Of a stretch of DNA of 64,000 nucleotides, positions 24,574 through 24,673 are shown piece by piece. Location: the NCBI RefSeq assembly GCF_000007005.1, contig NC_002754.1. The stretch is one strand, 5' to 3'. The position numbers and the translations under genes were made by a program. The DNA is from Saccharolobus solfataricus P2 (GTDB lineage: Archaea > Thermoproteota > Thermoprotei_A > Sulfolobales > Sulfolobaceae). Positions within the stretch are counted from its first letter, which is position 1, and the number at the start of each line of letters is the position of its first letter. The notes beneath the pieces were generated by a model that saw only the letters and a list, made by a program, of their open reading frames with translations, was not told the DNA's origin and did no database searches.

Positions 24574-24673
24574 GTAAGCCCTCCCCCGAATCGCCACGTG
24601 GGTTGAAAGGACCCACGTGGCAATCTTAGTTGACACTATGCTTGAAGTTTGGCCGAAAGGTTTATTACTGAAC

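Follow-up and report, generated by a model that had tools for sequence, protein, structure and literature searches.

Comparative sequence analysis points to an outward-facing archaeal promoter at the right end of ISC1229 that circularization would redirect to a bridge RNA

The insertion sequence (IS) ISC1229, an element of the IS110 family, is represented by three pieces in the 64,000-nucleotide (nt) stretch of the Saccharolobus solfataricus P2 chromosome that we analyzed (approximately positions 1,426,000 to 1,489,999; hereafter, the window). At the right end (RE) of this element we could recognize a candidate archaeal core promoter, composed of a transcription factor B recognition element (BRE) and a TATA box, and we lean toward the reading that this promoter faces outward and is redirected, on circularization, to the bridge RNA and the transposase encoded from the left end (LE). 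Judging from the sequences, the promoter would be redirected by circularization and not assembled from halves, with only the initiator and the promoter-proximal region coming from the LE. What is new here would be an archaeal BRE/TATA variant of a circle-activated IS110 promoter, the junction promoter of IS621 being already known. To our knowledge, bridge RNA systems have been characterized experimentally in bacteria only. If our reading is correct, the logic of expressing only when excised has been rebuilt with a eukaryote-like transcription apparatus, the invariance of the last 20 bp of these REs is accounted for, and a promoter fires outward from integrated copies with a known Cbp1 site just upstream. 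The element would also offer a setting, natural to a thermophilic archaeon, in which bridge recombinases are expressed.

Self-comparison of the window delimited the three pieces as follows; copy B had supplied the LE sequence used in an earlier, sequence-only reading of the same DNA.

Positions 23399 to 24673, plus strand: copy A of ISC1229, nearly full length, with a frameshifted transposase.
Positions 50490 to 50889, plus strand: copy B of ISC1229, an LE fragment.
Positions 59975 to 60388, plus strand: copy C of ISC1229, an RE fragment.

Since the spacing and the ends of copies A, B, and C coincide with the published coordinates of ISC1229 in strain P2 (1,449,398 to 1,450,676; 1,476,489 to 1,476,889; and 1,486,154 to 1,486,387) (Blombach et al. 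2024, PMC10883916), the element is ISC1229. The relatives of its transposase carry the annotation IS110 family or ISC1229, and the two open reading frame (ORF) pieces of copy A matched PF01548 (DEDD_Tnp_IS110; E value, 4e-7) and PF02371 (Transposase_20; E value, 2.5e-25) in Pfam, that is, the N-terminal DEDD/RuvC-like domain and the C-terminal Transposase_20 domain of the IS110 group. Furthermore, as in IS110 elements, the two ends (CCTATATAGG… and …TTTATTACTGAAC) are not inverted repeats.

For the comparison, a genome scan returned loci L001 to L003, and a protein search returned full-length relatives, whose coding loci are L081 to L087. Counting the window copies, the ISC1229 clade was represented by 10 left and 12 right ends. 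Besides the intact L081 of S. solfataricus, the set draws on S. islandicus, S. shibatae, Acidianus brierleyi, and two metagenome-assembled genomes, one from Sulfolobaceae and one from Marsarchaeota. Intact copies are present in S. solfataricus P2 (1,745,648 to 1,746,880) and in S. islandicus L.S.2.15. Loci L088 to L091 represent the ISC1190 clade, and a third lineage is represented by element L202 of S. tengchongensis. Distant archaeal IS110 loci from Thermoplasmatales and Thorarchaeota (L004, L007, and L009), the ends of which are undefinable from single copies, were left out.

The elements of interest at the REs of copies A and C are the following.

Positions 24653 to 24667, plus strand: candidate BRE CCGAAAGG followed by the TATA sequence TTTATTA (24661 to 24667) in the RE of copy A, outward-facing, recognized by sequence, matrix score, and conservation.
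Positions 24667 to 24673, plus strand: donor left half and core (ACTGA-AC) up to the element end at 24673, where the homology between copies stops; identical to the left donor guide ACTGAAC.
Positions 60368 to 60388, plus strand: RE of copy C, with the candidate BRE/TATA CCGAAATATTTATTA (60368 to 60382) and the terminus CTGAAT, recognized by sequence and RE alignments.

The sequence-only reading had noticed a purine-rich stretch followed by TTTATTA at both right ends, and the sequences are indeed ccgaaaggTTTATTActgaac at 24653 to 24673 and ccgaaataTTTATTActgaat at 60368 to 60388, with exact coordinates. The 13-mer CGAAAnnTTTATTA lies just inside both termini and is absent elsewhere in the 64 kb. 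TTTATTA alone occurs 57 times on the two strands of the window; GAAAnnTTTATTA occurs twice, in both cases within these REs.

In order to score such sites, a BRE/TATA weight matrix was derived by expectation maximization on the upstream regions of the window's own genes. It reads G-A-A-A-A-n-n-n-T-T-w-T-A-A-w, with a modal start at -38, and upstream of the 44 long ORFs of the window, TATA-like hexamers are most frequent at positions -29/-30 relative to the start codon. Start codons can stand in reasonably well for transcription starts here, since a 5' untranslated region of 4 nt or less precedes the coding sequence in 69% of S. solfataricus mRNAs (PMC8448881). As a control, the validated T6 promoter scored 5.56 (99.6th percentile). 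The RE site scored 3.15 in copy A (98th percentile of all window 15-mers), 4.97 in L081 and L087, 6.75 in L001 and L085, 5.15 in L202, and 7.48 in ISC1190. These values span the 98th to 99.9th percentiles of window 15-mers and fall inside the range of real upstream regions (median, 5.9). As in archaeal promoters, the TATA sequence of each RE site is adjoined upstream by a purine/A-rich BRE, which sets the direction. With a positional tolerance of ±4 nt (a 9-position window), a site this good would arise by chance with a probability of 0.15 in copy A, 0.055 in L081 and L087, 0.014 in L001 and L085, 0.049 in L202, and 0.007 in ISC1190. Since 15% of random 9-position windows reach 3.15, copy A alone is not significant; the box owes its significance to a block that is invariant in the 12 ISC1229-clade REs and kept in two more lineages.

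The block in question, C[G/A]AAAnnTTTATTACTGAAC (C-[G/A]-A-A-A-n-n-T-T-T-A-T-T-A-C-T-G-A-A-C), shows two exceptions among the 12 REs, a single G-to-A replacement in L084 and the replacement of the terminal C with T in copy C. Both n positions and the five bases upstream of the block vary freely, and the varying positions coincide with those of low information in the matrix. ISC1190, with 41 to 51% protein identity, keeps GGAAAGGTTTTTATA despite its different donor half-site, CCGGAAG-CT, and L202 (47% identity) keeps CAGAAAGATTTATTACTGAAC and CAGAAAGATTTATTA. At the sequence level, an outward BRE/TATA-like element is conserved across three Sulfolobales IS110 lineages. A second RE block, TAG…GAC(AC)TATGCT, located upstream of the BRE (24626 to 24650), is conserved in ISC1229 and ISC1190 and partly in L202.

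The LE of copy A extends for about 210 nt ahead of the conserved catalytic motif of the transposase. RNAalifold, applied to 11 LE copies, gave a 5' hairpin, a target-binding loop, and a donor-binding loop, which are arranged as follows.

Positions 23398 to 23415, plus strand: left junction core TC (23398 to 23399) and AT-rich donor right half CTATATAGGTTTTATT, between the core and the hairpin, recognized by the ten-copy homology and by the match to the right donor guide.
Positions 23416 to 23444, plus strand: bridge RNA 5' hairpin AGTCGGGGAGAG-TAATA-CTCTCCTCGGCT, recognized by RNAalifold and compensatory pairs; its first base is the predicted transcription start.
Positions 23445 to 23506, plus strand: bridge RNA target-binding segment, with an ATG (23453 to 23455) inside, recognized by structure, guides that match the copies' own flanks, and the N termini of relatives.
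Positions 23507 to 23560, plus strand: bridge RNA donor-binding segment, recognized by structure and by guides corresponding to the RE terminus and the LE start.
Positions 50489 to 50650, plus strand: LE of copy B, with the core AC, the donor half CTATATAGG, the 5' hairpin (50507 to 50533), and the bridge RNA, recognized by alignments.

The 5' hairpin, which starts 17 to 18 nt inside the LE (at 23416 in copy A), has a 12-bp stem, and 9 of the 12 pairs differ on both sides between ISC1229 and ISC1190, while all remain standard pairs. Several are G.U pairs on the plus strand only. These compensated pairs and the strand-specific G.U pairs indicate that the hairpin is an RNA structure on the plus strand. 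The pairs were counted by a script on ungapped sequences because MAFFT misaligned the hairpins of the two lineages. As regards the guides, the left donor guide ACTGAAC (23516 to 23522) is identical to the RE terminus, and the right donor guide ATATAGG (23542 to 23548) matches the LE start. The left and right target guides match the copy's own flanks over 9 and 12 nt in L001, 9 and 9 nt in L087, and 8 and 7 nt in L084. In copy B, the left target guide GAGGGAAAC is identical to the left flank (9 nt). Compared with the flanks of other copies, left target guides match over 2 to 5 nt. Taken together, the RNAalifold structure, the hairpin covariation, and the matches of the guides to flanks and ends identify the ISC1229 LE, by sequence criteria, as encoding an IS621-type bridge RNA. 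No bridge RNA family was matched in Rfam, either over the whole window at the gathering threshold or in an E-value scan of the LE; the hits obtained, mir-3747 and RAGATH-23, were spurious.

The true ends of the element determine the sequence that a circle would contain. In the ten left ends, the homology begins at [A/T/C]C-CTATATAGG, and in the right ends it stops at …TTTATTACTGA-AC, followed by GCC…. The core is xC at the left and AC at the right in ISC1229, and CT at both ends in ISC1190, where the left junction reads left target (TGACTTC)-CT-TATATAAAAC and the right junction reads …ACCGGAAG-CT-right target. The ISC1190 guides span the left target with the core and the left donor, both TGACTTC-CT and ACCGGAAG being matched. 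Because ISC1190 shows this clean succession of left target, core, and right donor, a shared 2-nt core was adopted for ISC1229 too, and its circle junction is most likely TTTATTACTGA-AC-CTATATAGG (…TTACTGA-AC-CTATAT…). Immediately before CCTATATAGG, the copies have A, T, or C, in step with the last positions of the left target guide. An ACAC junction was rejected as the general case on account of this variable base and of the ISC1190 ends. The junction proposed in the sequence-only reading (…CTGA-AC-AC-CTATAT…) counted AC twice, the second AC being the flank of copy B, and was 2 nt too long.

With the shared core, copy A and L081 have a gap of 22 nt between the last TATA base and the base that opens the hairpin; the figure is 21 nt for L001, L082, and L085 and 24 nt for both ISC1190 and L202. 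The modal gap between TATA and start in the matrix of this genome is 23. The hairpin base was previously placed 25 nt after the box; it is instead the 23rd nt, and both spacings are acceptable for an archaeal promoter. The accompanying claim of typical promoter spacing agrees with the modelled junction, in which the box would sit at the genome's modal TATA-to-start distance from a hairpin supported by covariation. If transcription begins at the hairpin base, the box would occupy -29 to -23, in keeping with archaeal TATA boxes, which are centered about 26 to 27 nt ahead of the start. The stretch between the core and the hairpin is 16 to 17 nt long and AT rich, and the predicted start (…ATT|AG…) is a pyrimidine-purine step that fits the S. 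solfataricus initiator consensus (C/T)(A/G) (PMC8448881). In the modelled junction, the RE site ranks first in all ISC1229 and ISC1190 copies and second in L202.

The mechanism that we favor is the following. The last 21 bp of the RE would constitute a complete archaeal core promoter, with the BRE C-G-A-A-A-n-n and the TATA box TTTATTA directed outward, immediately upstream of the 7-nt donor half-site and core (ACTGA-AC). In the integrated state, this promoter would face the flanking DNA. In the excised circle, the RE would be joined to the LE through the shared core, giving the chimeric sequence TTTATTACTGAACCTATATAGG, in which the TATA box would precede the first base of the bridge RNA 5' hairpin by 21 to 24 nt (22 in copy A), and the AT-rich donor right half would provide the promoter-proximal and initiator sequence (…ATT|AG). 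The TATA-binding protein (TBP), transcription factor B (TFB), and RNA polymerase (RNAP) would then start one transcript at the hairpin base. This transcript would be at once the bridge RNA and the transposase mRNA because the ORF of the clade starts at an ATG inside the target-binding loop. We infer circle formation with this exact junction, the hairpin base as the start, binding of the RE box by TBP and TFB, and circle-dependent expression from the sequence features described above.

Several points weigh against this reading. The box of copy A is weak (GG precedes the TATA), with its 98th percentile and a chance of about 0.15. The three lineages are homologous, and their agreement is conservation and not independent recurrence; moreover, the terminal 50 nt or so of the RE are fairly conserved overall, and part of the conservation signal could reflect other functions. 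On the LE side, all three lineages retain the (C)TATATA(G/A) of the donor right half, and in ISC1190 this TATATA, with the RE terminus as BRE, scores level with the RE site. In IS621, read-through yields bridge RNA from integrated copies (PMC13626964). Finally, a direct search for circle or tandem junctions with the pattern TTTATTACTGA-N0-8-CTATATAG in metagenome and viral collections yielded no true RE-LE junction among 82 metagenome and 28 viral pattern loci, which were chance AT-rich matches except L102. This locus was rejected as a junction, since a real RE is followed there by GCC-TATATAGGTTTT and then by unrelated DNA. A scan of viral contigs for the LE pattern gave no match.

The exception has some features of its own. 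On the minus strand of the metagenome contig, L102 presents at positions 600 to 640 a genuine ISC1229-type RE followed by GCC-TATATAGGTTTT, which corresponds to about the first 12 nt of the LE past the core. The string may be an LE remnant or a donor-like target.

The conservation of the RE block might have a different origin, if the block served as donor DNA for the complex of recombinase and bridge RNA or as another cis site, for excision or host factors, and the likeness to BRE/TATA were incidental. The block does abut the donor half-site, within an RE terminus conserved in general over about 50 nt, and both the copy A score, reached by 15% of random windows, and the 57 occurrences of TTTATTA in the window leave room for coincidence in an AT-rich genome. 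However, the bridge RNA guide covers ACTGAAC only within the block, and in IS621 a 22-bp donor is enough for recombination with the RNA supplied in trans (PMC11208160). Because such a donor suffices, RE sequence more than about 11 bp from the core would, by analogy, be dispensable for recombination. Furthermore, ISC1190 has wholly changed its donor half-site and kept GAAAGGTTTTTATA, the variable columns fall exactly on uninformative BRE positions, and the spacing to the hairpin is held at 21 to 24 nt in three lineages. We consider this explanation rather unlikely; in particular, the ISC1190 comparison and the conserved spacing speak against a box that serves recombination alone or that arose by chance.

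Where a promoter can sit in integrated copies is also informative. No archaeal promoter fits inside the LE because BRE and TATA span about -37 to -23 and the hairpin is only 17 to 18 nt inside. The flanking DNA, at the position needed for a start at the hairpin base, reached the 35th to 86th percentiles of the matrix in 15 of 16 integrated copies, the exception being one ISC1190 copy with a chance hit; the flanks are unrelated to each other. Weaker TATA-like sites occur in the donor right half of the LE (97th percentile) and also across the junction. In particular, the joined ends, as modelled, give a second, junction-spanning BRE/TATA-like site (GGAAGCT|TATATAAA in ISC1190 and CTGAAC|TTATATAAG in L202), 15 to 17 nt downstream of the RE box, from which the start would fall in the hairpin loop; in ISC1190 it is as strong as the RE site.

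Such sites could mean that the functional promoter is the TATATA of the LE donor right half (CTATATAGG, TATATAAA, or TTATATAAG), with a BRE taken from the RE end or from the target flank. The transcript would then begin about 25 nt downstream, within the hairpin loop or close to it, and would be without the 5' arm. TATATA is kept in all three lineages even though donor halves are reprogrammable in principle, and the junction-spanning site reaches the 99.9th percentile in ISC1190 (GGAAGCT|TATATAAA) and the 99.7th in L202. Integrated ISC1229 copies, moreover, contain the weak internal site ATATAGGTTTATTAG (97th percentile), and such a site would solve the initial priming of excision; as far as its sequence tells, it could give low-level expression from integrated copies. 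On the other hand, the junction-spanning site of ISC1229 itself is weak (96th percentile), and with target flanks the site falls to the 74th to 82nd percentiles in three of four ISC1190 copies. A start at that point would halve the hairpin, which nevertheless has RNA-type covariation and G.U pairs, and the conservation of TATATA is also explained by its covariation with the right donor guide. On balance, it seems unlikely that the LE site is the functional promoter.

A further possibility is that the bridge RNA and the transposase are produced mainly by read-through from upstream host promoters into integrated copies, the 5' hairpin being a processing or stability element and the T-rich RE motif an outward promoter for neighbors or part of a terminator. 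The IS621 bridge RNA is weakly expressed at genomic loci, read-through being enough for excision (PMC13626964), and some expression must come before the first excision. The REs of ISC1190 and L202 contain T5 runs, which are terminator-like in archaea, whereas the ISC1229 box has only T3, so there is no consistent oligo-T terminator. Moreover, read-through leaves unexplained both the BRE-like CGAAA at a fixed distance from the TATA and the fixed spacing to the hairpin across the junction, and it is compatible with a circle-specific boost, not exclusive of one. We judge it unlikely to be the main source of the two products.

Returning to the redirected RE promoter, its architecture differs from that of a split junction promoter (Pjunc), since BRE and TATA both lie in the RE. 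For the same reason the promoter would persist, pointing outward, when the element is integrated, and the outward orientation described in the sequence-only reading stands. Its proposal of an archaeal equivalent of the IS621 junction promoter is sustained by the conserved outward BRE/TATA and requires correction in that the elements are not split between the ends. Expression only after circularization is plausible, with the weaker TATA-like LE sites and IS621-type read-through standing beside it. The outward transcripts should start some 17 to 18 nt past the REs, at about 24688 to 24691 for copy A and at about 60403 to 60406 for copy C (P2 coordinates, about 1,450,687 to 1,450,690 and 1,486,402 to 1,486,405). 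For S. solfataricus, public Cappable-seq and ChIP-exo data sets are available (GSE141290 and GSE226026).

Downstream of copy C, on the strand that its box faces, the window contains two overlapping ORFs at 60446 to 61182, of 67 amino acids (60446 to 60649) and 186 amino acids (60622 to 61182). The first begins 58 nt past the RE and about 40 nt downstream of the predicted outward start. These small ORFs could be transcribed from the outward promoter.

With regard to the transposase, the coding region of copy A is the following.

Positions 23609 to 24573, plus strand: ISC1229 transposase of copy A (DEDD/RuvC-like domain and Transposase_20), recognized by Pfam, translations, and intact relatives.

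It is broken by a one-base frameshift near 23990 to 24000, and an insert of about 48 nt (23549 to 23596) interrupts its start region, separating the donor-binding loop from the beginning of the catalytic domain; a diverged form of the insert is present in the S. shibatae copy L087. The annotated gene starts were inspected in the window (23453 to 23560) and in L082, L081, and L084 (from position 1201). The annotated transposases of the ISC1229 clade (351 to 355 amino acids; P0012, P0013, P0014, P0016, and P0017) begin at the ATG inside the target-binding loop, and these ORFs run through both guide loops (MV[D/E/G]…EAKSS…GVTNPYRRTEHCDKIH…) ahead of the catalytic VGVIGIDISK. Unlike ISC1190 and L202, the clade has no canonical start codon adjoining the catalytic motif. 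If the annotated starts hold, the programmable guide segments of the bridge RNA would also be codons. The ORF of L087 (P0006) is annotated from an ATG in the apical loop of the donor-binding loop; the same frame in copy A meets a stop.

Copy A is also peculiar in its guides (23459 to 23497). Its own left target guide, GAGACACTATC, finds no match in the left flank (23370 to 23399); the flanks (23370 to 23399 and 24672 to 24690) instead match the left guide CGTGAGTTC of L082 and L085 and the right guide ACGCCCCCGT of L084. This suggests that copy A inserted by means of another copy's bridge RNA in trans or that its guide was replaced later. The copy A left guide resembles GACACTATGC within the ISC1229 RE (24633 to 24642).

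Upstream of the candidate promoter, the RE contains a hairpin of a published type.

Positions 24593 to 24621, plus strand: RE hairpin GCCACGTGGGTTGAAAGGACCCACGTGGC with the CRISPR-repeat-like loop GTTGAAAG, a published Cbp1 site type, with a 12-bp stem, about 55 bp upstream of the TATA.

The hairpin (GCCACGTG-GGTTGAAAGGAC-CACGTGGC) occurs at 24593 to 24621 and at 60308 to 60336, with the CRISPR-repeat-like loop (A/G)TTGAAAG, and in L083 the loop motif is inverted (CCTTTCAAT). A scan for sigma70 promoters and terminators, irrelevant for archaea, recovered the RE hairpin only. Chromatin immunoprecipitation peaks of Cbp1 were reported in the 3' flanks of ISC1229 (Blombach et al. 2024, PMC10883916), and the "IS1229 binding site" oligonucleotide of the electrophoretic mobility shift assay (PMC10883916, supplement) is the reverse complement of the RE hairpin region of another P2 copy. 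Blombach et al. raised the possibility that, if the junction-promoter mechanism of IS110 elements is conserved, the access of RNAP, or excision, might be under the control of Cbp1 bound in the 3' flank (PMC10883916). They named no promoter; what the present analysis adds is a candidate BRE/TATA, located about 55 bp downstream of the hairpin that Cbp1 binds, and the link to a bridge RNA. The joint hypothesis, that the RE is a switch gated by Cbp1 at its high-occupancy hairpin site, with a circle-only promoter for bridge RNA and transposase and that the guide segments are translated as the recombinase N terminus, is doubtful, although its gating part, if true, would mean that a CRISPR-array chromatin factor silences an RNA-guided transposon. 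Elsewhere in the window, a tandem repeat (26511 to 26705; period of 105 nt, 1.9 copies, 92% identical) falls within an ORF that spans about 26324 to 27128.

Among known systems, the closest comparison is with IS621, in which the circle rebuilds an RE-LE promoter for transcription of the bridge RNA (Durrant et al. 2024, PMC11208160). Both elements combine a DEDD recombinase with an LE bridge RNA made of a 5' stem-loop, a target loop, and a donor loop, and in both the right terminus carries promoter elements, with a transcript that begins (by prediction, in ISC1229) shortly inside the LE. The predicted logic is also alike, a burst of RNA and recombinase coming from the excised circle only. However, the sigma70 -35/-10 promoter of IS621 is split across the core and absent when integrated (PMC11208160; Hiraizumi et al. 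2026, PMC13626964). In ISC1229, by contrast, BRE and TATA are both in the RE, and the transposase ORF of the clade starts inside the bridge RNA. Pjunc promoters are also found in the circle-forming IS911/IS3, IS30, and IS21 elements, where the joined ends create a strong transposase promoter. ISEc11 and IS492, of the IS1111/IS110 groups, are cited as further junction-promoter examples (PMC13626964). Unlike the BRE/TATA of ISC1229, all of these are, as far as is known, bacterial sigma70 hybrids. In the literature searched, we found no archaeal Pjunc, archaeal BRE/TATA junction promoter, or archaeal bridge RNA promoter. Outward IS promoters of the Pout type, as in IS10 and ISAba1, are complete terminal promoters that activate neighboring genes. 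ISC1229 would resemble them in having a complete terminal promoter that reads into adjacent DNA when integrated, but it differs in the conserved spacing to its own LE RNA, which suggests that the selected function is in the circle.

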